A DNA stretch of 64,000 nucleotides from Octopus bimaculoides (lineage: Eukaryota): NCBI RefSeq assembly GCF_001194135.2, contig NC_068989.1, positions 41,629,918 through 41,693,917 of the forward strand, read 5' to 3'. Below the pieces are notes generated by a model. The model worked only from the letters and a program-made list of their open reading frames with translations, searched no databases and had not been told where the DNA came from. Shown in pieces: positions 13,901-51,427 of this stretch. How positions within the stretch are numbered: position 1 is the first letter of the stretch; each line of letters begins with the position of its first letter. A program made the position numbers and the translations under genes.

Positions 13901-16799
13901 TTCATACCTAGAAATTTCTACCATAATTTAAACCAAGTTTAAAGTCTACAGGCATCTGATAAAGACACTAACAACAAGCAGGATAAAACCTGTCATCAAT
14001 GTAATTATTTCTACCATTGTCAGATTGAGGTTTTGTTGATCTAACGAAATTTAAATACAAGAATAACATCACAACAAAAAGAACATAATCTTAATAACTG
14101 ACAGGTAAGTTTAGAAAAAAAAAAATGCCATCAATATTTTATATGGAGAGAAAAAGGCAAAGAAAGCACAGAAGCACAGATGCTCGAGTCAAACAATAGT
14201 TTGAGTTTAAATGTTGTACTGGATCCCAACTTCTATCTTTTTATAGATCAAATAACTACCAAAAATATGTGATCATACTGAGTTTGTGAATATCATTATC
14301 ATAATTTTATGACATTTTCCCATGCTTGTATAGATTGGACCAGTTTTCCTTAGCACAACAGCTTGCCACTTGAGGTTCTTTGACACCATCTTCATAAGAT
14401 TCAGTTTCCTGAGATCATCTTTCATAATTTGTTTCCATATCTTCCTTGGTCCTCCTTTGCACAGGTTCCTTCCACTTGGATCACTCAATAGTTCTCTACC
14501 CAGCTGTCATCCTTTAGACACATCACATGTCCATACTTAGTCTTCTCTCTTGCACACAACATCTGATTCCTCTTATACGCTCAACAAGATAAGTACCTGC
14601 AACATATTGAGTTAACCATTTAGAGTTCAAACCGGCCAAAACTAATTCCCCTTTATTTGTTCAAACCGGTCAAATCCGGCTGTATCCACCTGCTCTACGA
14701 AATCGCTAAAAAAACTAAACAAATCACACTATTGAATTCTTGTAGCTTTGAGATAATGTGAGATGAAGCCTTTCCTGCCTTTATTCAAGTATAAATACTG
14801 TGAAAGCACAGAACTGGGAGAAAAGCAAAATTAACTGAGGTGGATGTCAACAGAGAAAATATTGACTTCCATAAAGTGGAAAAAATAAATGGAAGAAAAA
14901 AGTTTGCTGCATAAAAGAAAAACTGCGAAAGGGTATCAGATTGAGACTTCGTATAGGTGTTCCTATTTGCAAAGTGCCCTTGTGTAAAGGGTGCTTTGGG
15001 TAGTTTTGTTGTTAACACAACGTTTCGGCTGATATACCTTCCTACCTTCATCAGGTGTCTTGGGGAAATTTTGAACCTGGGTTCTCATTCCTAAGGTATT
15101 TTTCGATGTTATTATTATTATTATTATTCAGGTCACTGCCTGGAATCAAACTCAGAATCTTGGGGTTAAGAGCATGAGCTACTAACCCCAAGATTCCGAG
15201 TTCGATTCCAGGCAGCGACCCGAATAATAATAATAATGATAATGATAATAATAACAACAGCGAAAAATACCTTAGGAATGAGTACCCAGGTTCGAAATTT
15301 CCCCAAGGCACCTGATGAAGGCTGGAGGGTATATTAACTGAAATGTCGTGTTAACAACAAACAAGATGAGGACAAATATCTGTCAAATGTAAATAATGTA
15401 CATAATTCCTCATCTCTTAAATATAGAGCTACAGAAATATGTCATAACAATATTATTTTATCACATATTCCTTTTCATTTTATCATAAATATGTGAAAGT
15501 GAGAAATACATATTAATATTCAGTATGTTACACACCTGTATTCACCTTTGTCTCACCTGTTAATGAGCTATTTTTATTAGATGCATTCTGTTATGTAAAT
15601 TAATTCCTTAAATTGTATACGAGTACATAGCCAATGGTATGACTAGTAAAATAGTTTTGTACTTTATTTTCTATGAAAATGTTTGAATGAAATATAGAGA
15701 AAGAATAAAATCTTGTACCAATTATACATGTATTTTAATTAATTCAAATTAATGTACTTCATCTTAAAAAATGTAAAATTGTTGGAGGTTGACATCTGGG
15801 ATAATTTTAGTAACAAATCAAACATGTAAGATGTTTTAAGGATATGAATTTTAGTGTTTATTCATAATGTTATTGTTTTTACACCTGTTAATTAAATTTA
15901 CCTGCCCATAAAAGTCAAATTTAATCAGAAAGATCAGCTAAAATTACATAACTATAAACCACTGGCTTATAAGCACCCATTTATGAAATTTCAAATCTGT
16001 ATGTAGAAAATTAACAAAGTTACAAGCAAATATTGTGGACACCCCACTTGAACCTGAATAAATCAAAATTAATGTGAACAGATCAGCATTACACTTGACA
16101 AATTAATCTGAACACTAAAGGGTTAAATTTCAGCAAATATGAACTAATCCCATAACAGTTGTCCAGTTGACTAGTTGAAAGAAATCTGTATTTTACCAAC
16201 AATGTAGAACTGCTATTAAAAAAAAAAGCATCATCATTGTCATGGATAAAGGATACTTACTTATCAGGTTTTAAATCTCTGTGTACAATCCCATAACTGT
16301 GAAGGTATTCCAGAGCAAGCACTGTTTCAGCAAAATACATCCTGTTAACGATAACATAATAACATTACTACACAAAAGAGAAAATATAAAACATTGATAT
16401 AACATTTCTTTCCACATTCTTAAAACAAATCATTTAAGCTAACTTGGATGGCTAGCTTTGACTAATGATAATGACCAGTTTGCTGGCCAGCCAACATCAC
16501 TGGCTAGTGACTAGCTATAGTTAACAACACTGATCAGTTGGTTGGTTAGCTTCAACTAATAACACTGACCATTTAGCCATTGAAGGAGGTAGGTATGTGA
16601 GTAGCAATCAGAGTGATATTAGAAACTTTGCTAAGTCAGACTAATAAGTGTGTGTATGAGGGGGGGGGGATACATTAGGATTTAAGTAATAGTAGGGTTT
16701 TTACCTGGCAAGGTCCAAATGCAGTCCACCTGTAAACTTCAACAACGTAGCACAATCTCCTCCTTCCACATATTCCATTACCATACAGAAGTTTTTCTG

Positions 16800-16833
<34 letters not shown>

Positions 16834-19800
16834 TAATAATAATAAAAAAATACAAGACATGCTCTATACAATAAAGGTCCAATAAAATAAACAACCATCA
16901 CAACATGTACTCTACAGACTGGATACCAAACAAAAAAACACAGAACACACGATACAAACACTAATACAACAAAAGACAGCAACCAAACTTCATAACAAAA
17001 CGAAATAATGCAATACAACACCAGGAAGAGTTTGCATTCCCCTAGCAAAAAAGAACACACAATCTACAGTCAACAATAGAAATCCTTCAACCACTTTTTG
17101 TCAACTGATTTACTCGATTTTTTTCTATATATCTTAATAATTACAACTCAAACATAATATAGATTATGATTGTAAGAATAGAATTTATCAACCAAACACT
17201 TTAAATAATGTCATTGTACAACACACTGGCTGCTTTTGACTGGAAGACATTAGGAAGGTGTAGTAGTAAGGGTAATTCAATAACTTACTTTGGTCTCAAA
17301 ACTGCAGTACATGCTCACCACAAATGGGTTGTCAGTGAATGTGAGAATGTCCCTCTCAACAAATGCTTGTTCGGTTTGGTTGCGCATGAGTAAATGCTGT
17401 TTGCCTATTTTCTTGATGGCAAATCGTTTCCTTGATTCTTTGTGACGCACTAGATAAACAGCTCTGTAAAATACAGGAGATTTAGAGTAGACATAAGTAT
17501 GGTGACAAGAACTGTAAAAAGAAGTATATATTAAAAGAAGAAAACATAGACACAAAAGCATTCTTTTTTACTTGCACAACTAACCTAATTATTGAAACTT
17601 CAAATATGCTGTAAGCATGTTGAATGTTTTCTGATAAAATATCAGCCTGTATTAACCCTTTAGCATTCACATTTCTTTGTCAAATGCATTGCTTATTTAT
17701 TCACATTGTTTTAAATTAATCATGCATTATTTTGTAGCTTCAATGTTGTATTTGTATATTTTTAGAACAACACTGTAGGGTAGGTGTGAGAGGTTGGATA
17801 TGGTCAGTTTTAACATAAAACAGGTAAAATATTTGGGTTGGATACGACTGGATTAAATGCTAAATGGTTAAGTACTTTATTCTATTGTATTTTCAACATA
17901 CAAATCGAATTTTTCCCACCAAAATTAACAACCAAAAACGGTAGGCCGACTTATAAACAAAGATAACTTTGGAGAAGCAAAAATTCCATGTGAAATGCAG
18001 CAAGATTTGGATAGATAATGACGATACTTGAATGTTTACACTATATACATTTGACTTGTATGCTGGAAAATATGGTCTATAGAAAACTTTACTCTATATA
18101 GAACACCTTAATCTAGATAAAAATTCCTTTTTCTATATAGGACACTTTGTACAGAACATCTTATTCTTTAGAGAACACTTTATTGAATATTGGCCCAGGT
18201 TGGAACCTGGCTATAATAAATAAAAATTATTCTCCATTACCATAGTTCATCTAACTGACAAATAAACATCAGATCATCCAGGAAAGTTAGCTACAACATC
18301 CTAATCATGGGGACTGTTATTCTTCCCACTATGTCTCACTGCATTTGCTGGAGCTGTGATATGGCTCACCAACCTGAATATATGATGGACTCTTCCATTG
18401 ATTTTAACATGCCACCCTCCAGTCATTCCATTAACTGGACAACCAAATCATTGAATTACACATATGGTCAATCTGACACGCTTCTATATAGTTTTTGTCC
18501 ATCCAAATTCACTCATAAGGTTTCAGTTCATCCAGGGCTATTGAAAAGGTGCTTGCTCAAAATGCTGTGTAGCCAGATTGAACTTGCAGCCTCATGGTTG
18601 TAAAACAAACTCCTTTACCACTCACTAATGCCTGCATCCACTCTGAACACACACACACATATTTATACACGCACGCACACACGCACAAACAGCTTAGATA
18701 AACACTTATGATATCCGGTAGTTGTTTACAGAATATTGAAATATTTAGCTGTTTAAAAAGCTATGTTGAGTGACTTTCTAGCTTCAACATACTTTTACCA
18801 TGATAGAACCAACCACTATGAAGAAGACACAATGTTCTTCACATAACCAAAAGCAAATATTGTTTTGCTATGGTGCTTCTGCAGCCAGTTCTTTTCTTAC
18901 AGCTGATATAAATAGTATGTCTTCCTTTCTCTTTTATAACTGGGGCATGTCTGTAGGAACTGCTTGTTCAAATTGTGTTTTACGCTTAATGCTTTTGCTG
19001 TAATTAACCACTTCATTAAATGTCCTTGTAATAATCACAGGAAATGGGTGTGATGTCTGGTTTATATTTCAACAAGCAATATAATTATATCTTGATTAGA
19101 CAGCATGTAATGATTATAGTTTAAACTTATGACATTGTGGAGAGTAAGTCAATATCTTCTGACTGCAAATGAAATATGAAGATACAAGAGTTTTCTCAAT
19201 ATTTGCAAGACACTTTCTTTAATTTATTGCAAACATACACATCGTTCATTCATTTATTGCTTGTTTTATCATCCTGGTATGAATTAGATGGGGAGGTAGT
19301 TGAAGCAATATTTCATGGTTACATCCAGATGCTCTTTCTGTAACCAACTCTTATCTGTTTTACAAGTACAAGATTTTTTTTTTATTTCACTAACCTCTGG
19401 AAGCATAGAGCAACTGGTTGTAATGTCAACAAGGAATGTAAATATTATATTAGTGTTTAACTTAATAAAAAGCCAAGGAACATCAACATTTGTGCAAACA
19501 GGCACACACACAAACAAGCAATACAGGCATTGGTCAATTCGAGGCTAGAGTTGATGGCACTTGCCCAAGTGGGACTGAACTCAGTACCACATGGACGTGA
19601 AGCAAATGTCTTAACCATACAGACATGCCTGTACCTATACATAAAATTACATGACAACCATCCACCTTTATAGCAAATAGAAGTATTGCATACAGGACAG
19701 CACCATGTGTGTCACTCAAATGTAAACCTTAACAAATAAGAAAATTATGTTAGCTTAAAGCTTTTGATACCAGATTCCTGCTCACATACACTACCTCTGT

Positions 19801-20481
19801 TTCAATTGATTTTGAAAATAACAATGAATCTAGTAAAATAACTGTAGTCATTAACCTCGTGTTTGAAACAAATTAACATAAAATTTTGATGGAAGATTAT
19901 AATTTAGATGACTTTAAAGAGAAATTTGCATCAAAGAACCATTGGTAGTTTTCAGGCAATTTGTATTATAAAACCAAAACTGGTTTTAGGTGGGTTGGTA
20001 TCAAAAAGGCTTAATTTTGCTAGTGATTTATATTGACAGGGCAATAATAAAAATGATGATAATGATGCAGTTGCTTTACTGACAGCTTCTTTAATAGGAC
20101 CTTATTTGCATTGACCCTGAAACTATGAAATGGTAAAGTCAAGCTAGGTAAGATTTCGAACTCTGAACAATGAGGTATTGAAATAAAGCAGTATGTTTGT
20201 CTAGTGTTGCAACAAACAACAAATGTCTTGAAAGGTGGGATAAAACACAAAACACGGAATTGAAGTAAAAGAAATAAAAGAGTAAACTAACACGTAAACA
20301 AGAAACAAAGAGTGAAGGAAGTAACTTACGCAAAAGCTCCACTGCTAATTAGTTTTATTGTATCAAAATCATCCTCTGATGGGGTTGCTTTCTTCTTTTC
20401 TTTTGTCTACAAATTGGAGAAGAAAAAATTTAATGACCAACATCATTATTGAGCCATGAGGAGGAGAGATAGAAAAAGAGG

Positions 20482-20525
<44 letters not shown>

Positions 20526-23500
20526 TGTATGACATTATAAAATAAATTTTGTGAATGTACAAGTCTCCATACTCTTTATTATTATTATTAATTATATATA
20601 TATATATATATGTCTCAAAATGTATTTAAAATTTTTTTTTCTATAAAGCCAAAACAATGCGAGTTATAGGAAGTAATGTAAGTTGATAGCATGTACTTTG
20701 TATTTCAATATTTCAGTTAGGACCCCCTACATAGAAATACTGATATACAAGACAAAAGTACAAACCATCGACTTGTATTACTTCTTATAATTTGCGCTGT
20801 TTTGGCTGTATAAAAAATAAAAGCATTTATATATATATATATATATATCAAGCCAATGCTCCATACAAACTATATTTACACACATACACACAGACACATG
20901 CAGGCGTGGCTGTGTGGTAATAATTTGCTTCTCAACCACATGGTTCTGGGTTCAAAATGTCTTCCACTATAGCTTCGGGCAAACCAAAACTTTGTGATTG
21001 GATTCGGTAGACAGAAACTGAAAGAAGTTTGTCAAAAATATATGTGTATGTGTGTCATTGTTTATGTTTGCCCCCCACCCACTGCTTTTTGATTGGTGTT
21101 GGTGTCTTTACGTCCCTGTAACTTAGCAGTTCAGCAAAAGGGACCAATGGAATAAGTACCAGGCTTTAAAAAAATAAGTCCTGGGGTTGATTCACTCGAC
21201 AAAAAATTCTTCAAGGCGGTGCCTCAGCATGGCCACAGTCTAATGACTGAAACAAGATAATATATATATATATATACATATATGACTACATTGCCCAATA
21301 CATCTTTTATTAAAAATGGTTACGATGTAAGTTGAGAGAAATTTAGCTGCTGTTTCCAGCAGGTTGAGCATTCATGCAAGAGTTCAGTTGCTGAATGACA
21401 TACATTGATGTCATCCTACTCGTTAGGCAACAGACACAGTAGAAAATGGCTTTTACTTTCTCTCATTTTCTATTTCATTCATTCAAAGTGCTCGGTGCAA
21501 AGAGCAGTGTTAAGAATGAGTTACTTAGGGAGGGTGTAATAAGAGATGAGAAGAAGGGCTGGCAGAGTTTCAGTTATGCATATATACATATACGTATAAT
21601 AGATTCATTATGAGGATGTGATAATTATTTATTGCAATGAGGAGGATCAGTGCTAAAAGATTTTTCAGTACCTTACCTATCTAGATCAGAAAAGTAGAAA
21701 AAAATAAGTAAAGTTAAAATGATTAATGTCTGTGATAAGAAAACTCGGGCAGATATAGTTCCAGAGTGACAGAGTTAAGGAGAGAAAGAACTGGATTAAG
21801 TGCTTAATAGGTTGATCAGATGATAGATAACAGAAACAGAAGATGAAAGTAACAAGGCTGAACTGTACAAACATCAAGTTCCTTACAAGTCCGTTTTTTT
21901 GTATAATGAGAGAGAAGGTCTTTTTTAGATGGATGGATTCTGTTTCTGAAGTAAGATAATTATGACTTACTGCATTGCTATCCGCTGATTCTGCTCCACT
22001 AGCGCAATCTGTACTATCGTGCATTCCGATTTCCTGAACATCTGGAGAAAGAGAACAAACATATGGTTAATTTGTTTAATATCAGTTATGGCATACATAC
22101 ATACATGGGCTGGTTGTAGGACTTATTTAAGACAGGATTTTAGAACTGGCTGCTTTTACAATTGCCAACTCTTTCTAAGGATTTTTTTTTTTTTGATATT
22201 CCACCAGTTTTTGAAAATTCAGAGTGACCACTTGTAACATCAACAAGGAATGAAAACATCCTATTACCATTTAGCTCAGACAGTGACGAGTGAAGCTATG
22301 GAAAGTCAACATTGACATACATATGCACACACATATATGTACACACGCACACACACATGATGGGCTTCTGTCCAGTTTGTCTAATTAATGCTTTTCCTTG
22401 CCACTAAACTTGAGTTTGCATTCCACAATTTTGAAAATGCAGCACATAATGTTCATCGGGAGTGTAAACACCATGGCACTGTTTTTTTTTTTTTTATTTC
22501 AGACAATTTCATGTAAGTGGAAATAGTAACTTTAAAGTATACATACACATGCACACAGAATTTCCAAGCAAAGTCTATTCATCAGTTTTATTCACGAGAT
22601 ATCAGTCAGTCTAAAGCAACAAATATAAGACAAATTGTCCAAGGTGCTATGCAATGAGACTGTACCTAAAACCATGTGGCTGTGAAGCTAACTTTATAAC
22701 CATGTAACTATACTTACACACATCCACACACACCCACTCACATACATACATACATACATATATATATAAAGAGAAACAGACAAAGTTGTGTATTAAATGC
22801 TTGAACAATTCACAATTCACTCTGGTCTACTTTGCATGTAATATTACAAAGCCTTTGGTATTTAAATCAAAAGAAACTGAAAAACTCAGATTGGCAGGAA
22901 AGAGAGAGTGTGTGTGTTCTTACCAGCAAGTGGATCTCTGTTTAATCCCAATTTCTGGATGATATACTGGGGGATATCAGCTTTGACATACTGGCGTGCA
23001 TGGCCTTCTGCTGCCTCCAGCATATGGTAAAATTGCTCTGGGTTGAATTCCTTTAGGGGACAAAAAGGGAGAAAAAACAAAAATAAGATGAATAAACTTA
23101 ATTGTAATCAAGATAGCTCAGTTGGTTTATTCACCAGTGAGAAGCATATTTAGTTTCTTATCAATTCTATCTTGTTCTGTTGTAGCACTAGCACATCATC
23201 TTAGACAAATTTCAACAGTCATAATTCTTTCTTGTGAAACAATTCTCAAATCTTTTAGAAATGATTCTCATTTCACTATAGTCACATATGGGTTAGATAT
23301 TTCTTCAGAATTGGATATTTGCATTAATTACTGGGGAGGTTAAAAGTGGGAGCAACTACATCCTGATGTACGTGGCACTTTAGACACAATAAGCTTGAAT
23401 TTCAAATGTTGCATCATCACGGGTTCAAAAACCCCACTTTTTTCCAATGAGGGAGAGATTATTTTGGTTAATACAGATTAGGCCGACTTGACAAGACAAA

Positions 23501-24747
23501 CACTGTAGTGACTTACCAAGCATTCCAGTAGACGAGCTGGTCGGGAAACTATGATGAGTAGCTTTTTGATGAGTGGATAGAGGTACTGATATGTCTCTTC
23601 AGATCTCTCTTGAGCCTTCAATAAGAAATAGGAAACAAAATTATTGGATAATGGAATACAAGATTCAAAAGGTAGAAACAATATATAAGTCAGTATGATG
23701 CCACAGTAACAAACCCAAAACCACGTGGTTACAAAGTGAACTTCTTAGCCACATTGTTGCACACACAAACTATAATACAAGGTTCTGAATAAGGCTAAAA
23801 AGGCAGTTACTGAAATTCATTGTTGTTCTTAAAAAGCTTCTCTAGGCATTGATGCACGAAAGCTTCAACATTTCACAGCAGAATTAGCTGAAGCCCACAA
23901 AATTATGTACCAATTTTCCAACAAGTTTGGCTACCTTTTTGAATTCAATAAGCATGGCTTAGTGGTTAGGAATATTCGGCTTGTACTTGTAAGGTAGTAA
24001 ATTCAATTCTTGGCAGCACATTGTGTCCTTGGGCAAGGCACTTTCACATCACTCCAGTTCACTCAAATGGCAAAAATGAGTCATACCAGTAATTCAAAGG
24101 GCTGAATCTCTCTACACTAAGTGTAGACATGTCTGTGGAGTGCCCAGCCACTTGCATATTAATTTCACAAGTAGGCTGTTTCATTGATTGGATCAACTGG
24201 AATGCTTCTCAATATAACAGATGGAGGGCAAGTTATTTCTACCATCTATGGGTATGCTAAAAAACAGCACAATATCCATGAAGTTTGAAAACAGTTTTCC
24301 ATGCTCAGAACTGCTGAAGCATGGAATAAAATCTGCATTGGCTGTTATCTATCAGGACGCTGCATCCTTCAAAAGTTCCATGTCTTCCAAAACCCACCAA
24401 TACTACTCCTGAATTGCTGATGCACACTTTCCACTTTATGTCCTTTTGTGCTTTATCCTATATACTGTGCAAATATTTTTGGCTATCATTTTTGTCTTTC
24501 TTTACTTGACTTATTGTTGCTCTCTGTCCCCTCTTTTACCATTTTCTGAGGAACAGTAGTGTACCTGAACACTGTATACAACAAGCTTATTATTATTATT
24601 AATAAAGTGGTGAGCTGGCAGAATCGTTAGCATGCTGGGCAAACTGCTTAAAGGCATTTTGCCTGTCTTTATGTTCTAAGTTCAAATTCTGCTGGCATCA
24701 ACTTTGCCTTTCATTCTTTCAGGGTCAACAATTTCCCTGGAATAATA

Positions 24748-24786
<39 letters not shown>

Positions 24787-26500
24787 GTCATCGTTAATTC
24801 TAGAAGGATCATGGGTAAATTCAGGTTGTTTGTCAGCAGTAAATATTTGCTATAAAGAAAAACAATAAAATAACCAAATAAAAGAAATAAAAGAGCTTAC
24901 ATCTTTGAGTAGTTTCTCTAAATTTTCTGACAATTCACAGAAATAATTACTAGTTATTAGTTTTTCCTGAGATTTTTGAAGACAATCTCTTGCCATTTCA
25001 AGTACTTGGTGATGAAGAAAGCTTAAAATTGCATCAGGTTCAACTGGTGCTCGGTTTAATTCAATAAAGAGCTCCAGTCTTTCTTCCATCTGATCAGTGG
25101 CCTATATAAATAGATAGAAACAGAATTTATACCTTGGATACTATCAATGAGCCCTACAGTTATCATCCAACAAATATTTACAAACAAACATTCAAACAAA
25201 GGATTTAATCTTCCTTGGCAGCAACACCTTACAAAGCAAAAGATGTATGGCATCTTGATAATCAGAGAAAGAACACATTATGCAGAACACTGCTGGAGAA
25301 AAAGAACAATCTTCTCCTCTTGTAACCCATGCACTGACATACAGGTATTGGTAGAACAAGAAGTGCATATATCAATCAACTCGTGGAAGACACTGGATAT
25401 CAAGGTGAGGATATGAAGACTGCAATAGCAGATCAGGACATCTGCTGTGAAAGAGTTGTATTGCTCTGGGCAAGATGTTTGACCATTGACATATAGAAGG
25501 ATTTAATTGTATACATGATTTCTCTATTAACCATGTCAGACCACCAGAATAAAAAAAAAAAACAAATAAAAAACATTTCTAGTTACTTTATTCATAAAAA
25601 AACACTAATAAGTAAAGTTACTAAAAAAAACAACACTTCATATTCTCAAAGCCATTTCTTCTCTTTAGATGCTTTTAAATCTATTTTTAAAACATAATTA
25701 AGCAGAAAAATACAATTAGGAAGACAAGCATAAATTAATTTAGAGCTATGTCTGATTGAATTGAGAAGAAATCATATTAAGGAAGCTGTTGGATTTCATG
25801 TTGAAAATTAATTCAAAATGTTCATGGAAGTTTTTTTAAGAATATTATTCCTGAACTGATTTTAAGGAATAAAGGAGTATAAAACTAAAAACAGCAGATG
25901 AAATAATTTTACAGCAGACATAGTTAAGTCTAAACATAAGGCAGACAAATTTAATTTTTGCTTTTGAGCAATACAATACTGAAGTAATGGATATGTGTAT
26001 ATGAAAGAGACAGACAGATAGAAATATGGTGGCAATGAAAGGAAGAGAGAAATATTTAAAAGAATCTAACCTTAGGGAATCTCTCTTTATACATATTATT
26101 CATCATGACTATTTCCAAATCACTTGCAGGAGAGCGAGCAGGACTACTACAATTGGAAAATATAAACAAACATTAGTTAATTAATCAAATATTTTTTTTT
26201 GTACATTAATGAAGAAATAAGAGAAGCATGTATATCTCAGTATTGATGTGTATGTAAATGTATGTATGATTGTATGTGCATTTATATATATATAAACAAT
26301 ATCATCTAACATCCATTTTTCCACACCTGCACTGGTTGGACAGAGCTTATTTGAAGCAAATTTTTTATGGCTGGATGCCCTTCCTGTCACCAACCCATAT
26401 CTGTTTCCTAGCAAGATAATATTTCCCTGTGGCCAGATATGTTCTTGCAGAATATTGGAGACGAATGACATTGCTTCTAAGACAGTGACAATCATTTACA

Positions 26501-26560
<60 letters not shown>

Positions 26561-26751
26561 TGGTGGGCAACCTTTGACTTATCCAAAAGGCTTTTTAACC
26601 CAATATTTACACATCATTATTGACAGCTTTACCTGCTTCAAGTTCCAATGTTCTTCAATATCCCCAAAACACACACACACACACACACACACGTATATAT
26701 AAATAAATATATCTAAAATATGATCGTATGGAAAAATGGACATTTTATATC

Positions 26752-26793
<42 letters not shown>

Positions 26794-27107
26794 TCATCAT
26801 TTAACATCCGTTTTCTATGCTGGCATGGGGGTGAACAGTTTGACTGGAGCTGGTAAGGCCAGGGGTTGCACCAGGCTCTATTGTCTGTCCTAGTTTCTAT
26901 GGTAGGATACCCTTCCTAATGCCAAGCATTCCAGAGTGTATTGGGTGCATTTTATGTAGCACCAGAACCAGAACCAGTGCTTCTAGCATGATATATATAT
27001 ATATGTACACACACACACATATATACATATAAGTGTCTTCTACTATAGCTTCAGGCTGACCAAAACCGTGAGTGGATTTAGTAGACGGAAACTGAAGGAA
27101 GCCTGTC

Positions 27108-27159
<52 letters not shown>

Positions 27160-29995
27160 TAATTTGTAGCTGATATCTAAAACTATTTTGATTTTCTTTT
27201 GTCAATAACTTTTACTTCTGATGTTACATCATTATATCTATCAATAACTGGACCAAAGTAACTGCTTGTATCAAAACGACTGAATAGCTGAGTTGTTTTG
27301 GTAAGATAATCTCTTTCAGATCAAACTGTCTGCATCAGGTAAATCTTTATCAGTTTTTGTTTTTAGTTTTTTTTTACATTAGAATCTAGGGGAGGTCATC
27401 TGAGTTACTGCTTTATTGCTTTGTTTGCTTCTCAAAAAATAAGGAGGTCAGTGAAAATTTTTCTTTTTTCTTTTTTTTAGATAAAGTTAAAACTCATCTT
27501 CATTGTCATATATGACAAAGTACATCAACTGATGCACTAGATGATGGTGCTTTTGCATTCGAAATGGTGACAGATTGACACATTATGGTAAATGCTACCA
27601 TCACCAGGCAGCATTCTGAATAGTAGTTGAAGATGAGATAAGAGACCAAAGAAAACACATGACCTTTGACATATAAGGCTGTAGGTTATCTAGTGAAAAC
27701 AAAAACAAATGAAAATAAATAAAAAAGCCTTTTTGAAAGAAACAACCAACTGATATAAACTAGTTTTAAAAATGATACAAAGAAAGTAAATACAAACAGA
27801 TAAGGCTCACCTACAAATATCATCTTAACCAAGATGCAACTTGTTTAGGTTCCGGAGAAAAGTGGATTACGAATAAACCATTTTACTATATTTCTGTTGG
27901 CAGACGTTACCTTTTGTTTCAATTAATTTTGAAAATAAACAAAGAACTTAGTAAAATAACTTTGTTGTTATTACACTAATCTAATGTGAAATTTTGATGG
28001 AAAGTTTTGATTTAACCCTTTTGCATTCAGATCACTCTTTCAAATGTAATGCTTGTTTATTCACATTGTTTTGAATTAACCATGCATTTTCTCAGAGTTT
28101 TGAGACTGGTGTATGAGAGGTGTGCACCACAACATACAGGTCTGTAAAATTATAAATAAGCAAATAAAGTACAGTGCTGTGCAGTGGCAAGAGTCCTTAC
28201 CTCAAACTTCGGGAGCGGGGTCGGGGTCGCGGTGACCACCGTCCTCCACCAGAGTCATCCTCAGGTGGAACAGCATTGTTTTCGTTACTTCCAAAATGTC
28301 TAGTGAGAATATGCAGTTCATCTGGAGTAGGCTGAGATGGCAGCTGGTGAAGACGCTCTTGAGAAGAGCACTGGGACTGAAATGTTAAGGAAAGAAAACC
28401 AAAATTAACAAAGGGGATTGGCAATTAAAATGATATAAGTGATTTGAAAGAGATTTGGCTGTTATTTCTAGCAGGTCAAGCGAGCCCCCACATCAAAGTG
28501 GCTTCTAATTTTTTTCTTCTTTTTTAAAATCTTTTGGTTAGGAAGAAAGATAGTGTCCATGATTTTTTACAGGTCATGTGGCACAGGTGGGTGGAAGAGG
28601 GGAAGATATTCTCAAACTAGAGACTTGAATGCTTGCAACAGAACGAACTGTGTTAAAGGTAGCAACCAGATGGTGGTGCTAACTGGGTGACTGATTAAAT
28701 CTTCCACCCAAGTGGACTATGGCAGGAGGAATTGAACTCAGAGTTCAAAGAACTGCAACAAATACTACAGGATATCTGGCCAGACATTCTTACAGTTCTA
28801 CCAATCCACTGCCCTAGATCAGTATTTTTTTTTTTCGTCTTCAAAAGAGATGAAGGCCAAGCTTGACTCTGGCAGGATTTGAAATGGGGAATTGTAACAA
28901 ATACTGTGAGGTGTTCTACCTTGTGATTTTATGACTCTGCCAATTTGCTATCTTAGTTAGCTTGTCTTCTACCTGATTTCAGGAACATTGTGATTTTAAG
29001 CCAGGAATAAAGATAAGGAGACAGAAAAGATTAAAAAGTCATTATAATCATCATCATCATAATGCCCACTTTTCCATGCTTGCATAGCTTCGACACAGTT
29101 TATCAAGGCAGGTTTTCCACTGTAGGATGCCCTTCCTGTCATCAACCCTTACCTGTTTTGAAGCAAGGTAATATTTCCCCACAGCCAGACATGTTTTCAC
29201 AGAAAATTGAAAATTTGATATTCATTTAGAACATTACAAAATGTCACACACATACATACAAATACACAAATAGATCTTTCAGTTTGCTTACCAAATTCAT
29301 TCATAAGGCTTCGGTTGGCATGGGGCTTTAGTAGAAAATACTTGCCCAAAGTGCCACACAATGGAGCTGAACTTAAAACTGTGTATGTAGTTGGGAAGCA
29401 AACTTCTTAAAGTAAAGTTATAAAAATATATAAATACATAAAAATTTGAAGTAACATACCGAGACATTGGAGCTAGCAGGTGTGTTGGTTCCATAACCAG
29501 ATGATGGCAGTGATGCAAAAGACCATCTACGCCCATCCATCCTGAAAAACACAGAGAGAAGGAAGAGAGGATGATAATTTTGAAAAGAGAGACAACAACC
29601 AAACTGTTTAACAAAGCAGAACTCCTTTCTGTACAGGATTAATGTGGTAATAATAATATAACATGAGGGTGGAAAGTCACAGGCTTTAATAGTGGATCAT
29701 AGGGTATGTTTCTGCACTCCACATCAGCTTTAAGTTGCTGGGTTCATATTCATATTGCATCAACAGCTGTCTGTGGATGCTTCATCAGGGCAAGAACTTG
29801 ATCATACTTCATCCAATAAAGCATCTGCAGATAGATGTTGTTGAATAATATTCAAATGCACAGTAATTATTAAGAGTAATCTTGCATAATACTAGATGAA
29901 TATGAACCCAGTAACTTAAAGCTGATGTAGGGTGCAGAAACATACATTGTGATTCACTTTGTCAGGCATGGTAACTATTCTGTCAGTTTGCTGCT

Positions 29996-30060
<65 letters not shown>

Positions 30061-31338
30061 GCAGCAAGCTGGCAGAAATGCTTAGCAGTATTTTATCTGT
30101 CTTTATGTTCTGAGTTCAAATTCCACCGAGGCTGACTTTGCCTTTCATCCTTTTGGGGTTGATAAATTAAGTATACTGGGGTCGATCTAATCGACTGGCT
30201 CCTTCCCCCAAAATTTCAGGGCTTGTGCCTAGAGCAGAAAAGAATAATAATAATAACAATAATCTTTTCTACCATAGGTATAAGGCCTGGATTTTGTGGG
30301 GAGAGAAACAGTCAATCTCATCGACCCCAGTACTCAATTTATCGACCCCAAAAGGATGAGAGGCAAAGTTAACCTTGGTAGGATTTGAACTCAGAACATA
30401 AAGACAAATGAAATACTACTAAGCATTTTATCCGGGCTTGCTAACAATTCTACTACCTCACTGCCTTAATAATAATAATTATGGTTTCAAATTTTGGCAC
30501 AAGGCCAGCATGCTCAGGGAAGGGGTAAATTGATTATATCAGCCCCAGTACTCAACTGGTACTTATTTTATTGACCCCTCAAAGATGAATGGCAAAGTTA
30601 ACCTCAGTAGAATTAATAATGATGATGACGATTTCTTTTATCAATGATAATAATAATAATACAAAGCATGTTGTCAAGTAACATCATCCCACCAGTACCT
30701 CAAGCCCATAATATGGACCCAGCAATACAAGATCTAAAACAGAAGTCACAAAAGGAGCAACCGTTATAAGGACTGTTTGTTGTATGGGCACAAAACCCGA
30801 CAACTTTTTGAAGGGGAAGGAAGGATTAGTTGATTACATTGACATTAACTCAGAACTTAAGCAATTTTAAGATAGTGCAAAACGGAAAAAAAAAAAAAAA
30901 AATTGAAAAACAAGAATTATTTTTACATTTATTCTCAATCATTGCAATTCAAATTAGCAGACAGGTTAATTTGAAAGGGTTAATAAATTAGCTAGTTGCA
31001 GTTTGTTTCCTTTTTCAATATTTCCTAGTAAACAATCCTTTGGGTGTGAAAAGACATATTAACATGTGTGTATGTCAGTGTGTTTGTGTGTGTGCTTATA
31101 TATTTAAATATATACAGGTGCACATACAAATATACACACACATATGTATACATNNNNNNNNNNNNNNNNNNNNNNNNNNNNNNNNNNNNNNNNNNNNNNN
31201 NNNNNNNNNNNNNNNNNNNNNNNNNNNNNNNNNNNNNNNNNNNNNNNNNNNNNNNNNNNNNNNNNNNNNNNNNNNNNNNNNNNNNNNNNNNNNNNNNNNN
31301 NNNNNNNNNNNNNNNNNNNNNNNNNNNNNNNNNNNNNN

Positions 31339-32994: not shown

Positions 32995-33678
32995 TAAAGG
33001 GTAGGTTTGTATGCTGTTTAACATTGTAGAGTAGGTGAAATGCTGCAAGATGAAGGTTTCACACACATTCCACACAACCAAACAAGGTGTAAATCTTCAC
33101 TGGCACACCAAAGAATGCGCATATTGTAGTGTGTGTGCCGATAGAAAGATAGATAGATAGACAGACTCCAGTCAGGTGGCAACAGCGATGCATGATCACA
33201 TTATGATTATTCCTTGAGTGGGGGTCAAAAGTTATGTTACACATTTGCAATCATCCACTACAACTCTGAGTAGCATGCATTTTAAAATTTCACTTAGGCA
33301 TAGCAATACTGAAATCCTGGTGTTAGAACTCAATATGCCATGCTTCAGAATAAAGCAATGAGTACAGAGCATAATATGAAATTTTTAAAAATAACAAAGA
33401 AACAGTAATTGCATAATCAACTTAATTCCTGTTCTGTTGTTGTTTCTTTAATTTCACACACACATTTTTAGGATATATACTTTTAGGATGTTGATAGTTA
33501 TGGCTGGTCAGAGAGTGACCCTTGGTTTTGGACTTATAAAGCGCTTAGTCGTAGAGGCAACTCAGACTCACCAATTTGAGTCTGATGAGTCACCTATATG
33601 GCTTTATAGGTGTGAAACCAATGGTCACTCTCTGACCGGCCATAAAAATACATTACTGCTTTAATGAACTACAGACGA

Positions 33679-33731
<53 letters not shown>

Positions 33732-43238: not shown

Positions 43239-43309
<71 letters not shown>

Positions 43310-43722: not shown

Positions 43723-45744
43723 GTATAATATAATTCCATTAACATAAGGACAATATATTTAATTACTCATTCTCCCAACCTTTGTTTATTTCGTTTCTGT
43801 CTCCTTACTGACCTACACAGTCAGGTGCATTTGAAGACATAACTCTCAGTACTCCAAATATGCATAAACTCATCCTATCCTTCCCACTCCTTTGTTTCCT
43901 CAATACTACCACCTAGATCTCACATTTGATTGACCTTTGCATATTAAATTACCACAGACTTGTACACACACACACACAATTACCTGATATACACTGGCCT
44001 ACCTCTCCACAGATCAACAACTTCCAAACACATTTCTCAGTCCCAACAAAACCCGATGAATCTAGACGGAGCTCTGTTGTTCTCTAGATGAAACATCTTG
44101 TATGTTTTAAGTAAAGTTTAATGAAATAACACCCTGCCCTTTAACACGTTGAGTACCTTTTTTTCACTGGCTGACATTTTAGCACTATGACTAAGAATAT
44201 TAACACTATTCTCTTCCTCTCTTGATCACACACACACACAAATATATGCATCATATATGCATAAATATATACAAATATATGCATATGCAAACATATATAT
44301 ATATATATATATATATATAAACATACAAATATATGCACATACACATATAAACATACATATATACATATGAACATATATACATACACCTATATAAACATAC
44401 ATATATATATATGTATATACATGCATACAAACATATACATACTCTTTCCAAGCAATTCTGACTATCCCAATATCTATTTTCCCCTGTGTATGTCTGTATA
44501 TGTAATGTCTATCCTTCACTGTGTTTGCGTGTATACACATATATAAACACACACACACACACACACACACAAGGCAGCCAATCAGTAGAGTCTTTACAGC
44601 ATCAAATAGTATTTCTTTGAACTCTGTGCTCCATGTTCAAATCCTGCCATGGTCAACTTTGTCTTTTGTCCTATCAAGGCCTATAAATGAAGCACTAATC
44701 CCATACTGGGGTTGATTCTTCTCCTCTTATTCTTTTCTTTGTTTCTGTTAGTCTGTCTCTCTTTAGTACGAATCCATTGTCGCCTGATTTGAGAGAGGCA
44801 TGGCCTCTACAAGGGCAAGAAAAAAAAATGCCATAGACACTACATATTTCATAAAAACTGTTTCTAAGGCTCTGGGAAGAGTTGAGGACCCAATGCAAGG
44901 CAATCCATACAAAAAAATACATTGAGATGATCAGAGTTACTGGGAAAGAGCTCAAGTAATATTGACAGAGAAAATGAGGGAGAAAGAAAAACAAAAAAAT
45001 TTCACATCTCCATTGCTTATATAGACACACACACACACACATGCTTGTGCACATGCACACACAAATACACGCAGCTGCTACAAATATCATTAAATTCATC
45101 TGAAGCTAAGATTACTCAAGATCATTTTGCCAAACAATGCAAGATTTACTTTATAATTATTCTAAATAATCCTCTTGTGAAAGCAACAGATTTTTAAACC
45201 TCTGGCCATTGTTACTACTACTACTACCACTACCACCACCGCCGCCGCTGACACCACTAGCACGACTTACACCCCACCACCATCATCCCAAATCGTCACT
45301 ACTATCATTGTCAAGGCTGTCACTCACACCATCTCAGACAGCTAGCAAGGTGATGTGCTGTGACCCACAACTGTGCAGATGATGCACTAGGATCAAACTG
45401 TAATGCTACATACAGTACAACACACACACACACACACACACTCATGCATGCACACCACCATATTTTCAATATTAAACATATGTACAAATCAGGAGACAAA
45501 CGCTTTATGTTCACCCTCAGCTGCTGGCATTCATCTGCTTGTTCTGTTACACTTTTTTTTCTTTCTGTTCCTCATATTTCCAGTGAAAACGAAACACTGA
45601 GTATACATGTGTGTGTGTGTGTGTATATATGAACAAATCTCTATAAACATGAATATATACAAATGTGTATATGTATGTATATGCATGTATGTATGTATAT
45701 ATATATATATGTATATGCACAAATCTATATATACATGAATGTAT

Positions 45745-45902
45745 CATCATCATCATCATCATCATCATCGTTTAACGTCCGCTTTCCATGCTAGCATGGG
45801 TTGGACGATTTGACTGAGGACTGGTGAAACCGGATGGCAACACTAGGCTCCAGTCTGATTTGGCAGAGTTTCTACAGCTGGATGCCCTTCCTAACGCCAA
45901 CC
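45745..45902 (-). mobile_element. Young RTE-tailed element, 3' fragment (third copy of the 52287-53193 family)
   Basis: Nearly identical to 52287-52442 (one C/T difference seen); (GAT)n tail on the minus strand. Confidence 0.9.
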
Positions 45903-45965
45903 CTATATAAAATGTATATATGCATGTATATGTATGTATGTATATATTAATAAATATATATATGC

Positions 45966-46014
<49 letters not shown>

Positions 46015-46074
46015 TATCTATTTGTATATATATGTATATAAATACATACATACTTACATAAGTGTACATATCTA

Positions 46075-46124
<50 letters not shown>

Positions 46125-47345
46125 CATATCTTAATTTACTAAGACAGGAATACCCAATAGCAAGGCTAAGTTGCTTAACCTAATGCCCAAATGCACTTTT
46201 GTTTTTTGAAGAATTCAATGCGTGGCTAAACCATGGTACCCTGCATAACACACAGAAACGCTGCAACGCCACAGCACTGCAGGAACTAACAAGATTTATT
46301 CAAGCTGCTTGTGTGTTAACATGTCTGGATGCTGGATGAATTAATTATAGGACAGTGAGAAAAGGTATATGAGATTACTTGAACTGCAAATCAATAATAT
46401 TCCAGCATTCAGATCAGCTGGATATCGGGAAGATACTAATAAGGGAATATAAAATTATTTACGCCATGCACCGGTGCTCAAATGATATGAACGATTTAAT
46501 ATCAAGGAGATATTGATTAAGAAATAATAACATTAGCTCTTTTACACTGCAATGTTTATGATGTTTGCAAAACTCTTTATCAGAATAGCTATAGCTATTC
46601 TGCCACACCAGCCTTCACTGGTGCGGTCTCTGCTATTTATTTTGAAGTTGGGAAGTGTTTTGTCATGACACTACCATAATGTAATAATATAAACAATGGC
46701 AATTCTAGGGGTTTGCCTAATAAGAGATATTATCAAGAGAAAAATACAATTATATGAGATATTATAAAACCACCAAAATTCCAGGGAGAAAAGACAAACT
46801 GGTCAACTAATGGCATTTATCAGTTACAAACCTGATAATCTTGGTAATTAATTTTTTATTATTACATTAGTTTAATCATTATTAGAACAGCATTGAGAAT
46901 GAGTGGATAGGGTGTGTGTGAGAGGGTGGAAAAGATATGTTGTTGCTTTGATGGAATCCTGCACCGGATTTGAATTAGACAATACCAAAGAATTGGTGAA
47001 GCAAATATCAGCAGCGAGGTTTGTTGCATGGCATTCCTTTTGCCATGTGTCATCAGTAGCCTGTTTCTGAGTTGTCACCTTGCTTACCATTCTATCACAC
47101 AGTTATTGGAACATGATGGTGCATACTGATGGGATAGTGGGGGGTTGGTGGGGTGGGACAGCGTGTAAGTGGAGAGGCGGGGAAAGGAAGAGGTGTAGAA
47201 GGTGTTGTGAGTCAGAGCATGTGTTTTGAGGGAAAAAATAGTGGAGTGTATATATATGTATATAGGAGAGAGGAAGAAAATAAAAAAGGCATAAGAAAAA
47301 TAGATTGAGAAGAATATTAAATGAAATAGAATGTGTGTGTGTGTT

Positions 47346-47437
<92 letters not shown>

Positions 47438-47511
47438 NNNNNNNNNNNNNNNNNNNNNNNNNNNNNNNNNNNNNNNNNNNNNNNNNNNNNNNNNNNNNNN
47501 NNNNNNNNNNN
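47438..47511. other. Assembly gap (74 N) inside (GA)n
   Basis: Run of n. Confidence 1.
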
Positions 47512-47554
<43 letters not shown>

Positions 47555-50500
47555 AGTATGTATGGAAAGATATTATCAAAGTCAAATCATTGAAATTACT
47601 ATAAATATTCAAGTAGGCAACAATAGCAAATTTATAAATATTGAGTACAGAAATATTCCTTTAACATATTGATTATAGGAATATCAACTATAGAAAAACT
47701 CCTTTAATGAAGGAAAAGAAATAACAAAAATAGCTAATTTTTTTTTACATATTCACAAGGTTGTGGAGAGGCAGGAGAGGGAGACAAATAGAGAGAGAGA
47801 AAGATATATGTTGTGATGTTGGTAGTTTTTACAACAGTATTTATTACTAAATAACAGTGGCACTAAAACAATATTCTAAAGAATGTAAGTTTGGTCAAAG
47901 AATATACCATGGTAAAACAGGAACAAAGTGTAAGATGTTTATACATCCTTTCACCTATGTTTATGCCAAATACACCTGATGCAGATCTTTGTTTAATTCA
48001 AATATTCAATTACTACAGTGAACTTATAAATTATCTTATGGAATCTGTTTTGCTTCTCTCTTGTTTTTGTCCTGAAACCTGAAGTCGTTAACATTATGTT
48101 GGTAAAACCATTTCATTTCTCTATTTTGTTTAGTCAGGAAGAACAGGCAGTGTCCATGATCTTCGCATTCAATGAATGTTTCACCATTCTAAGTTGCTTA
48201 CAGTTTTTAGCTCTGTTGTCTGAATGTAATTGCCAAACAAACACACCTAGCTACTTCAGTCCTATTGAATGGAAGGGCAAGGGTGGGAGAGTGTTCTTCA
48301 CCAACAATAAAACCATGGTATATTTGTTTTATATATTCTTAAAACCTTTGCTTCCTACACACACACACACACACGCATTCCACTTTCATCTGTTCACTGA
48401 AATCTGATGACAACCATCCATTCTGTAGATATTTAGCAGCTAAACAATCCTATCTATTCCACCAGTATCACATATGCTTGCCCCACCTGCTCTATTGTAG
48501 GTTCAACATGTACCACCTTCAATGGAGCAGATAGAGCATACACATATGATGATAGTGGTGGCAGTAATAAGTAACAATTGCGGTTGCATCTCCCCCAACA
48601 TTCTGGTTGTTCTCTCCATCTCCTGTGGAGGTATGTGGCTTGGTGGTTAGGGTGCTGGACTCATGATCGTAAGATTGTGGTTTCAGTTCCTGGACTGAGC
48701 AACACGTGTTCTTGAGCAAAACACTTCATTTCACATTGCTCCAGTTTACTCAGATGGCAAAAATGAGTAATCCTGCGATGGACTGGCATCTTGTCCAGGT
48801 GGGGAATATACCATGAAACTGGGAAACTGGTCTTTATGAGCCAGTATGACTTGAGAAGGTAACTTTATCTTTTTTCTTCTCTATCTTCAGCAATACAACA
48901 CTATCTTTACACAGCAGTTGAGTGGCATGGCCAGCAGCAATATCCTCCAGGTCCTCAGGTTAGGCATTTCCAAAAAGTGCTCTTTATCAAGTGCCCAAGT
49001 TAGTGTATCATGTGGTAGAGGATCATGGCTTCAACAATGACCTTTGCAAGCATTTCGCTGTAAGACACAGAATCATGCCATGCAGCTCATGCGAAGGCTC
49101 ACCAAAAACTTAATATAGTGAGAGTACACTACTCAAGTGTCGCAGCTACGGAGGAGGGTGGTGATACAGACTGATTAGCATATGACAATCTTTGGGGAGG
49201 AACAACTTGTTCAGAAAGATTCTGTGCTGAAGTCTCCCAAAGACAGCTTACACCTGTTTAATCTAACTCTAGATGTACTATATGAATGCTGTCGTCATAA
49301 GGGAAAATGCTAAGTTTCTCAAGCAACATCATAGCCAGGGCATTACCAGCAATAAAAAAAGAGTGATATGCTCCAACTTTTGTTGTAACTCATCTTTGCA
49401 CCTTTGTTCTTATAAACCATGACATACATCCATTGCTATGAGAAGCAGTTCTTAATCCAGGCCTTAATGATATACAAGTAGAGGATACTCTATACATATA
49501 TTGCCTTTCCTTCAGTTGCTCAGCAGAGGTTTTATTGTCAGTGCCAGAGGACTTGTCCTTAAAAGAATGGATAGCTGACAGAACCTCCTCAAGGTATGGT
49601 AGACCAACCAGCATATACACCATGTATAAGCACATATACAGACATCTTCGACCCACTGTAAACCTGCCTTTTAAGTGAGAATGTAGAATGTACAGGTATT
49701 GCAGTTTAGGACACCAATGAGACTCTGTTGAAAGACAGAATACAATCCAAGCTGAAATACTGTTGACCAGTTTGCTTTCTTGAAAAATACATACATTCTC
49801 ACTGCTAAATGACATTATTTCCAGTGTTAGACTATCCCACTTAGTTTTATTCAACTTCACTTATCTTTAACTATTTTGATGTGTCTGTCACACAATGATA
49901 AAAAGCAAAACTAGGATAGTATATCTGGCAAGCTCCTGCTTTGATGGGATTGTTCAGTGTTGACACAATTCTTCCAGTAACAACAAAAACAACTTTCAGT
50001 GATTTTGCACTACCAAGAATGGTGTTTAATGTACAAACAATGTACCACTGACCACAATCAAACAGCACTACTGTTGTATTTATTGCCCATGGACAGGGCA
50101 CTCTAGCTACAGCTGGCTCAGATACACAAAGAACAGGTTCCTTTTTCTACCTATAAAAAACAATGGCTCAAACAAATAAACCATTTCATTTAAGTAAACA
50201 TACAAAAATATGTGCATGTGTGCATGACTCTCTTCCCTGCTGTGTGTCTTATCTCTCTTTCTCTCTCAGATGTTTATATGTAAAAGTTATTCCAGCTTAT
50301 TTCTTCTATGCATTTTCTTAAAATTCCACAAATAAGACTTGTAATAAAGGAATTAAAGTGCTACTTCTAGCAGTGCTTGTAGAGACTATACTGCAAAGTT
50401 TGTGGTTACACATAAAAGGAATGTGTTAAGATTCACACAATCAACAAGCTTGATGATATGTTTATTAAAAAATTACTTCCGAAATTCAAATCCACAAATG

Positions 50501-50562
50501 CTGTGTATTTGAACAGGATATTTATTTTTACATATCACAGGTCACAATCCATTTAGTAGTAA

Positions 50563-50602
<40 letters not shown>

Positions 50603-51087
50603 ATCATCATGATCATCATTTAACATCTGTTTTCTACACTAGCATGGGTTGGATGGTTTAACAGGATACAGTGAGCCACTGGGCTGTATTGAGCTCCAGT
50701 GCTAGCTTTGGCATGCTTTTTATGGCTGAGTACCCTTTTTAATGCCAACTACTTTACAGTGTGCTCTTTGTGCTCCTCACATTTGTGACGTTGCCCAATA
50801 ACTTGCGAGACAGAAGAAGAACATGGAGAAATGCTTAAAGAAAAAGCTCCTGCTACTAAGTGGTGATGAATTTACACCACATTATACAGGGGCAGGAGTA
50901 ACTGAGAAAGAGATAAACATGGTAGTGATTATATAATCATCATCATTATCATAGACGTTGTGGAAACACTGCGGCCATATTGTAAAAATTTGAATAAATA
51001 TGAATATATGGTATTCAGGTTTTAACAATGAGTTCTTTCTTTTTCATGGATGACATAGATCAACGTATTGGAATCCTCTGAACAAAG

Positions 51088-51427
51088 TGTAGTAGATACC
51101 ATGATAGAAACTCTCATATTGGCTTTTGGTGCAAAAATGCACTCTTGGTTATATCACTAGTGGGGAGATAAAACCCTGCTATTTCCAGCGATGAGACCAC
51201 CAGATCACATGGTTTTGACCTTCCTTGGGTTTCATCACTAGCACAAAGATGAGTTACTGCTATCTCTAACAGTCGAGTGTCCATCTTTGATGAGACCAAG
51301 GAAGGTCGAAATCACATGGTCTCGGCACTGGAGAAAGTAGGGATTTATCTCCCGACAAATGATATAAGCAAGAGTGCATTCTGCATCAAAAGCCAATATG
51401 AGTGTTTCTCTCATGGTATCTACCACA
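51088..51427. mobile_element. Inverted pair (~140-150-bp arms, 50-nt spacer) of a third hammerhead-containing element
   Basis: tgtagtagataccatgatagaaactctcatattggcttttggtgc... matches the reverse complement of ...gcatcaaaagccaatatgagtgtttctctcatggtatctaccaca at roughly 80%; core UUGAUGA-GACC(AAGGAA)GGUC-GAAA-UCACAUGGU-C at 51287-51321. Confidence 0.85.

Follow-up and report, generated by a model that had tools for sequence, protein, structure and literature searches.

Are the fold-back hairpins of this octopus locus the remains of DNA transposons, or do some of them record the insertion of small retroelements that end in a hammerhead ribozyme? The locus is a 64-kb stretch of Octopus bimaculoides DNA (assembly GCF_001194135.2, contig NC_068989.1, positions 41,629,918 to 41,693,917 of the forward strand), referred to below as the window. 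A preliminary description had singled out three hairpins, here E1 to E3, and a weaker fourth, E4, and had assigned them to several ribozyme-bearing families probably mobilised by Penelope-like elements (PLEs). This assignment is likely for E1 and E2, on the grounds of ribozyme hallmarks, orientation, and published PLE insertion structures; it does not extend to E3 and E4. E1 and E2 are probably decayed insertions of two unrelated families of small retroelements, each with a 3' end formed by a minimal hammerhead of the PLE type.

The architecture of the hairpins was examined first at the level of their arms. All four are recovered by an inverted-repeat search, and a self-comparison gives no match among them, so the earlier view that they are unrelated in sequence stands. 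E1 comprises two units of ~178 nt arranged head-to-head, with a nested inner hairpin formed by a 65-nt pair (15109-15173 / 15178-15242) around a 4-nt spacer. Read outward, each unit runs from a B-box-like piece through an (AAT)n tract and a body of ~60 nt to a minimal hammerhead and a final 9 nt. E2 comprises two head-to-head units of ~74 nt with a spacer of ~6 nt, and the full 148 nt folds as RNA at -87.9 kcal/mol (z = -13.8). In both elements the sense strands read outward, as had been proposed, and the 3' strand of helix I ends 9 nt (E1) or 15-16 nt (E2) from the element boundary.

PLE hammerheads are minimal type I ribozymes whose helix I spans 4-5 bp and whose helix II is often long. They carry an unpaired nucleotide between A9 and 10.1 and a conserved G10.1-C11.1 pair. 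Their helix III hairpin is absent or tiny; a palindrome at positions 15.2-16.2 lets helix III form between two copies (Cervera & de la Pena 2014, PMC4209133). The left arm of E1 (E1-L) displays all of these PLE hallmarks, with an unpaired A after A9, the G10.1-C11.1 pair, an ACGU palindrome, and a helix I of 5 bp. Its partner E1-R is a CpG-decayed version, in which the pair has become G10.1-U11.1, the palindrome reads AUGU (self-pairing through G-U), and the cleavage site is GUC. The right arm of E2 (E2-R) is complete, with a helix I of 4 bp, a helix II of 8 bp, GAAA, and the near-palindromic ACCAAUGGU followed by C. The unpaired nucleotide after A9 is G (or GU). Helix III amounts to 3 bp and a triloop in the monomer, and the ACCAAUGGU dimer would pair over 8 bp with one central A/A. 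Helix II alone reaches -9.9 kcal/mol (z = -3.75), and the hammerhead fold lies at -10.4 against a minimum free energy (MFE) of -13.6 kcal/mol; hammerhead folds here lie 2-3 kcal/mol above the MFE. The left arm, E2-L, folds no better than shuffles. Alignment of cores and arms therefore narrows the original claim of a hammerhead in both arms of each hairpin: it is borne out in E1, holds for the right arm only in E2, and fails in E3 and E4.

Table 1. Coordinates of the fold-back elements, their hammerhead motifs, and other features of the window.
Feature	Position	Strand	Description
E1	15005..15361		outer arms 15005-15127 / 15239-15361, 123 nt, 89% complementary
E1-L minimal type I hammerhead	15014..15059	-	GACAC CUGAUGA A GGU-loop-GCC GAAA CG UU GUGUU; descriptor match
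E1-R minimal hammerhead	15307..15352	+	GGCAC CUGAUGA A GGC..ACU GAAA UG UC GUGUU; descriptor match at helix II >= 2 bp
E1 inner hairpin	15129..15222		B-box-like GAGTT(C/T)GATTCC in each half: 15198-15209 (+), 15142-15153 (-)
E2	33498..33645		148-bp fold-back; terminal arms 33498-33542 / 33601-33645, 45 nt, 87% complementary
E2-R minimal type I hammerhead	33578..33630	+	GAGU CUGAUGA GU CACCUAUA-loop-UAUAGGUG U GAAA CCAAUGG UC ACUC
E2-L mutated relic of E2 unit	33513..33571	-	CUGA-GU, CAAAA, helix II down to GACU/AGUC; core lost
E3	51088..51427		three arm blocks, 81-90%
E4	29691..29958		arms 29691-29760 / 29889-29958, 70 nt, 86%
DUF1908 frames	~21.7-25.1 kb	-	MAST-type kinase gene
Kinase-domain frames	~9.76-10.0, 11.26-11.55, 16.70-17.06, 17.28-17.57 kb	-	MAST-type kinase gene
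~185-nt repeat copies	30060-30428, 5661-5857, 55803-56359, 63696-63875, 6494-6594, 24629-24725, 54899-55022		

Motifs of this size may arise by chance, and their frequency was assessed with a structural descriptor applied to the whole window. An initial version, with a helix III hairpin obligatory and bulges excluded, matched the right arm of E2 only. The final version set minimum lengths of 4 bp for helix I, 3 bp for helix II, and 2 bp for a self-complementary helix III; it demanded CUGANGA and GAAA in their places and any nucleotide but G at H17, and at the base of helix II it tolerated up to two unpaired nucleotides on the 5' side and one on the 3' side. It matched two independent sites in 64 kb, E1-L and E2-R. 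Dinucleotide shuffles gave 0.023 matches per window, and 0/300 reached two. Decoy cores, generated by letter permutation and run on the real sequence, gave a mean of 0.018 matches across 3780 core combinations with the true core included. Only 3/3780 combinations reached two matches, namely the true core, an overlapping variant, and one real decoy. Permitting one core mismatch (~30x more variants) added no match, and the reversed sequence, a control in which composition and inverted repeats are preserved, gave none. The bare CTGATGA string is not enriched, at 14 copies against 12.5 +/- 3.6 in shuffles. The exact core (C3-U-G-A-N-G-A9, G12-A-A14, U16.1-H17) occurs in E1-L, E1-R, and E2-R and is absent from E2-L, E3, and E4. 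This restriction to exact cores, together with the ranking of the true core among decoys, is hard to attribute to chance.

These figures bear on the simplest alternative, in which all four hairpins are ordinary fold-back elements, comparable to miniature inverted-repeat transposable elements (MITEs), or local inverted duplications, and the hammerhead strings are coincidences picked out by eye. The window is indeed rich in fold-backs that carry no hammerhead (52257-53223, 30076-30428, 20606-20848, and 2918-3042), and E4 has a clearly MITE-like appearance. A motif that lies in one of two inverted arms also recurs automatically in the other, the Rfam search came back empty, the E1 folds are ordinary, and E2 has TA flanks. 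Against coincidence, the full motif exceeds shuffles and decoy cores ~100-fold, and both matches have an exact core although single-mismatch cores are ~30 times commoner. Both sites lie within fold-backs, near an outer element end and reading outward, none of which was a search criterion. Moreover, hallmarks on which the search did not rely can be seen: A9 is followed by an unpaired nucleotide, and G10.1-C11.1 and an ACGU palindrome occur as well. A solo E1 half-unit is also known. We consider coincidence unlikely, though not negligible.

The reading of E1 and E2 as hammerhead-bearing insertions also has to be weighed against a set of adverse observations. The Rfam check suggested in the preliminary description was run and spoke against it, with 0 hammerheads in the window at the gathering score and none in E1, E2, or E4 at E <= 10. 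Rfam hammerhead models presuppose a helix III hairpin, and minimal hammerheads have none. The final descriptor was widened after the sequences had been seen, so its figures are somewhat flattering. Each family consists of two or three sequences, which provide no consensus and no real covariation test. In E1, helix II has 3 bp and 2 bp only, helix III forms only between two copies, and the hammerhead folds show no stability excess over shuffles (z = 0.25 and 1.6). The E1 hammerhead segment differs between arms at 9/46 nt, compared with 9/~124 elsewhere; since it diverges faster than the rest of the element, it is not presently conserved. E2-R lacks G10.1-C11.1 and has U/U at this position, or G-U with a bulge. 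The E2 arms show apparent double changes in helix II (C-G to G-C and C-G to U-A), which were rejected as evidence of covariation: the left-arm stem is 4 bp and is matched by shuffles.

The genomic context adds further points on the same side. Among the 238 stop-free frames of at least 60 aa scanned, none encodes a reverse transcriptase (RT) or GIY-YIG domain, and only the host DUF1908 and Pkinase frames find a match. No direct repeat longer than 3-5 nt was found at the boundaries, and no target-site duplication (TSD) was found for E1, E3, or E4. E2 is flanked by TA...TA, which is also compatible with a Tc1/mariner-type MITE and is ambiguous as a TSD because TA is its own reverse complement. 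No 30-40-bp PLE 'tail' was seen either, and the arms end symmetrically. Terminal inverted repeats (TIRs) are a trivial property of such fold-backs; no signature combining them with a TSD was found at the boundaries, which we count in favor of retroelements. E2 itself has a compound microsatellite, (TC)14(AT)12, at 33679-33731, starting 33 nt downstream; the element lies outside this repeat. PLEs reportedly prefer microsatellite targets.

E3 and E4 are not supported as ribozyme carriers. The right arm of E3 contains a helix II module (51287-51324; UUGAUGAG-ACC-AAGGAA-GGU-CGAAA-UCACAUGGUC). Its core reads UUGAUGA in the right arm and GUGAUGA in the left instead of CUGAUGA, so both arms lack C3. 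The left arm also has AAAA for GAAA, and helix I is absent beside the core. A change of C3 to U without a compensating G8-to-A change cripples hammerhead catalysis. For E3, a weak Rfam match to Hammerhead_HH9 reaches 16.5 bits (E = 0.31, 521 nt searched) where the gathering score is 52, and the E3-type helix II module, found twice in the window compared with 0.30 per decoy, is not significant. Reverse transcription by the Anolis PLE begins 85-92 nt downstream of the cut site (PMC11167929). The E3 module lies ~100 nt from the element end, which is compatible with that distance and makes an older relic possible. E3 may thus be an older example of a ribozyme-bearing insertion, although its hammerhead status is unproven. 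In E4, CUGAUGA is present in a single arm and no GAAA stands in register with it; the descriptor found no match there and Rfam no hammerhead at E <= 10. Its termini recur in a second copy at 56943-57072. Judged by these features, E4 seems to belong to a MITE-like fold-back family unrelated to the ribozyme elements.

Comparison of the two arms gives access to the history of each insertion. The E1 arms differ at 18 sites, including 14 transitions, and eight of the differences are CpG-type. Within the segment covering GAAA, helix III, and the cleavage site, 3/3 differences are CG<->TG, and the G10.1-U11.1 pair of E1-R arose through a CpG-type C>T change. These CpG-type differences point to an ancestor, CCGAAACGUCG, with G10.1-C11.1, ACGU, and a GUC site. 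The arms of E1 and E2 decay neutrally and show no sign of selection since insertion, and the copies are very probably inactive as well as decaying. The same pattern is informative on a host-maintained function, in which the hairpins would serve ADAR editing as intronic double-stranded RNA (dsRNA) or act as a ribozyme switch within the pre-mRNA of a MAST kinase. E1 is intronic, situated between kinase-domain exons of a MAST-like gene with E1-L in the sense orientation of that transcript, and the hairpins are very stable as RNA. Yet divergence between arms amounts to 11-26% and includes indels and CpG decay, change is faster in the ribozyme segment than elsewhere, and E2-L has lost its core. Maintenance by the host is, in our judgment, very improbable.

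Additional copies would help to distinguish retroelements from elements that move by their inverted ends. An exhaustive protein search with the stop-free frame of E1 returned one true relative, P0003 (UniParc UPI0006952653), known from a protein record alone. It covers the B-box piece, (AAT)n, and the body, and it stops at the TGA of CUGAUGA. Upstream of these it has unrelated microsatellite sequence and no mirror half. The E1 family therefore includes at least one solo 5'-truncated unit, and such a half-unit fits a retroelement better than a transposon or MITE that depends on both inverted ends. No further copies of E1 or E2 were found when translated frames were compared with a 5.8-billion-protein set. 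Scanning viral and metagenome contigs for exact patterns yielded none for E1 and, for E2, seven GC-rich bacterial chance matches.

If E1 and E2 are retroelement insertions, how might they have been formed? Their source would be extremely 5'-truncated PLE copies or non-autonomous users of PLE machinery. Each insertion would then consist of two 5'-truncated copies joined 5'-to-5', with the 3' ends and their ribozymes, 9-16 nt inside, facing outward. A typical PLE insertion includes a 5'-truncated copy in inverse orientation and so contains inverted repeats (Craig et al. 2021, PMC8557442). In Schistosoma mansoni, dual minimal hammerheads on opposite strands, 100-700 bp apart, have been interpreted as truncated PLEs (PMC4209133). 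Purified PLE protein, unlike R2 or L1, cuts the two target strands and extends each of them (Frangieh et al. 2024, PMC11167929). E1 and E2 present this PLE architecture of an inverted 5'-truncated copy with 3' ends outward.

The pairs would have formed during target-primed reverse transcription, and two routes can be envisaged. A PLE enzyme could prime cDNA on both strands of the break, which would place the 3' ends at the flanks and let the 5' ends meet centrally. Alternatively, a single cDNA could fold back and copy itself. The two copies are truncated at the same nucleotide and are separated by spacers of 4-7 nt, and two independent truncations would rarely coincide; both considerations favor fold-back of a single cDNA. 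In a read-through transcript, the sense ribozyme would be sequestered in an extended duplex with the antisense copy, and helix III would need a second sense copy. The pairs would for these reasons be insertion scars rather than working ribozymes.

A related possibility is that the hairpins are non-LTR retrozymes, that is, hammerhead repeats in tandem whose transcripts cleave themselves and form circles. The type I topology, the low-GC context, and unit sizes of ~74-178 nt are in keeping with this idea, and animal retrozymes are thought to derive from the pseudo-long terminal repeats (pLTRs) of PLEs (bioRxiv 10.64898/2026.07.22.740005). But no tandem arrangement was detected: Tandem Repeats Finder (TRF) reports microsatellites only, and self-BLAST gives the inverted partner only. 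The ribozymes described here are also minimal, whereas those of retrozymes are canonical type I with loop-loop contacts (PMC7229834), and an inverted pair cannot give a unit-length RNA between two sense ribozymes. A retrozyme origin is accordingly remote, and truncated insertions with a PLE-type 3' end account better for the inverted arrangement.

The inner part of E1 raises a separate question about the composition of its family. The inner hairpin is flanked by (TTA)n at 15109-15128 and (AAT)n at 15223-15254, as seen in the sequence and by TRF. One could imagine a composite mollusc retroelement resembling a short interspersed nuclear element (SINE), with an RNA polymerase III (Pol III) B-box head, internal (AAT)n, and a PLE-type minimal hammerhead as its 3' domain; we regard this as improbable. 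No tRNA is called in E1 by ARAGORN or Rfam, so 'tRNA-like' or 'SINE-like' denotes a motif resemblance and is a lead only; a tRNA origin of the inner part finds no support from either program. If true, the composite would be a SINE that borrows a PLE 3' end, as SINEs borrow the tails of long interspersed nuclear elements (LINEs). Frequent fold-back of E1 cDNA would then seed perfect intronic hairpins genome-wide and thereby long dsRNA in a heavy-editing lineage.

Other signals were recorded around E1. Rfam reports MIR2606 (59 bits) and MIR2670 (57 bits) at 15073-15293 and 30127-30377 with E = 1e-8 to 1e-11. As plant microRNA precursors these were dismissed; the scores are far under the gathering scores, and the matches look like generic long-hairpin artefacts. 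About 500 bp upstream of E1, a 77-aa stop-free frame (14276-14506, minus strand) has no Pfam match; its end resembles the tail found at the C terminus of ORF2 proteins from non-LTR elements (LINEs).

The window as a whole is AT-rich eukaryotic DNA (~34% GC), dense in microsatellites. Exons of a MAST-type serine/threonine kinase occupy the minus strand from about 9700 to 28424, where Pfam recognises DUF1908 in five frames and Pkinase in three; when joined and compared with proteins, the exons match MAST kinases at up to 70% identity. E4, E2, and E3 are positioned upstream of the last recognisable MAST exon. Three runs of N interrupt the sequence (31154-31338, 47438-47511, and 63130-63359). The first two fall within (TA/CA)n and (GA)n microsatellites, and every hairpin lies more than 1 kb away. 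Their continuity is irrelevant here because 15005-51427 is a mere envelope around separate small elements. The third, 230 N within a (TA)n/(CA)n microsatellite, was absent from the earlier account.

Several other repeat families share the window. At least 10 copies belong to an abundant ~185-nt repeat that contains a B-box-like GAGTTCAAATTCC and ends in an (AAT)n tail; neither Rfam nor ARAGORN calls a tRNA in it. At 30060-30428, two of these SINE-like copies are joined tail-to-tail via (AAT)n and form a fold-back without a hammerhead. A young inverted repeat at 52257-53223 has 328-nt arms that are 96-98% identical around a 311-nt spacer. Its open frames of 107-109 aa have no Pfam match, and relatives occur at 45728-45902 (97%), 26793-26974, and 57693-57848. 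Small fold-back families include a pair at 2918-3042 and 56728-56789 as well as the E4-type copy at 56943-57072, so that second copies cluster at ~56.7-57.1 kb.

What would these observations change? If confirmed genome-wide, E1 and E2 would define two uncatalogued hammerhead-bearing retroelement families in places where annotation pipelines would call MITEs, and the class of part of the repeat content would be corrected from DNA transposon to retroelement. The warning that a standard annotation would mislabel such elements as MITEs is probably justified for these two, yet E4 appears to be truly MITE-like. The symmetry of the pairs would furthermore offer a natural record of an outcome of PLE-type reverse transcription, be it two-strand priming or cDNA fold-back. 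Knowledge of hammerheads themselves is unchanged, since PLE minimal hammerheads, opposite-strand pairs, and inverted PLE insertions have each been described before. The inverted-pair architecture is likewise already known, from the S. mansoni dual hammerheads of 2014 and from inverted PLE insertions.

Comparison with known systems places E1 and E2 between several classes of small elements. They resemble MITEs and fold-back DNA elements in being short, non-coding, and palindromic with stable hairpins. They differ in showing no clear TSD, in carrying an outward hammerhead (E2-L now being a relic), and, for E1, in occurring elsewhere as a solo half-unit. The SINE-like Sm-alpha repeat of Schistosoma is said to contain a hammerhead, a finding credited to Ferbeyre et al. 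in 1998. Like Sm-alpha, the E1 unit may unite a Pol III-type box with a hammerhead within one short retroelement; the E1 box is a B-box-like 12-mer only, with no tRNA called, and both the arrangement and the ribozyme type differ. Like animal non-LTR retrozymes, E1 and E2 are small, AT-rich, non-coding, and type I, and probably PLE-dependent (Cervera & de la Pena 2020, PMC7229834). Retrozymes, by contrast, are direct tandem arrays of 150-450 bp repeats with canonical hammerheads and circular RNAs, whereas E1 and E2 are inverted pairs with minimal ones.

The closest likeness is to PLEs, with differences at both the ribozyme and the insertion level. Unlike PLE hammerheads, those of the window have no RT/GIY-YIG open reading frame (ORF) or pLTR nearby, E2-R lacks G10.1-C11.1, and helix II of E1 is weak; the B-box-like piece and internal (AAT)n of the E1 unit also set it apart from PLE pLTRs as described. 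Unlike PLE insertions, E1 and E2 have both copies truncated at the same point and form near-perfect ORF-less palindromes of 148-357 bp without a 30-40-bp tail. Their hammerheads lie 9-16 nt from the end, as opposed to an Anolis PLE reverse transcription start ~85-92 nt past the cut site. At the level of the insertion, they share with PLEs the head-to-head arrangement, outward 3' ends, 5' truncation, and lack of poly(A) (PMC8557442, PMC11167929). At the level of the ribozyme, the type I order, the exact CUGAUGA/GAAA/UH core, and the unpaired nucleotide that follows A9 are common to both, as are a short helix I (4-5 bp), a long helix II (8 bp in E2), and a palindromic helix III so short that two copies have to build it. 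Occurrence in opposite-strand pairs 100-700 bp apart, and as truncated copies that are widespread, is a further trait in common with the published PLE minimal hammerheads (PMC4209133).

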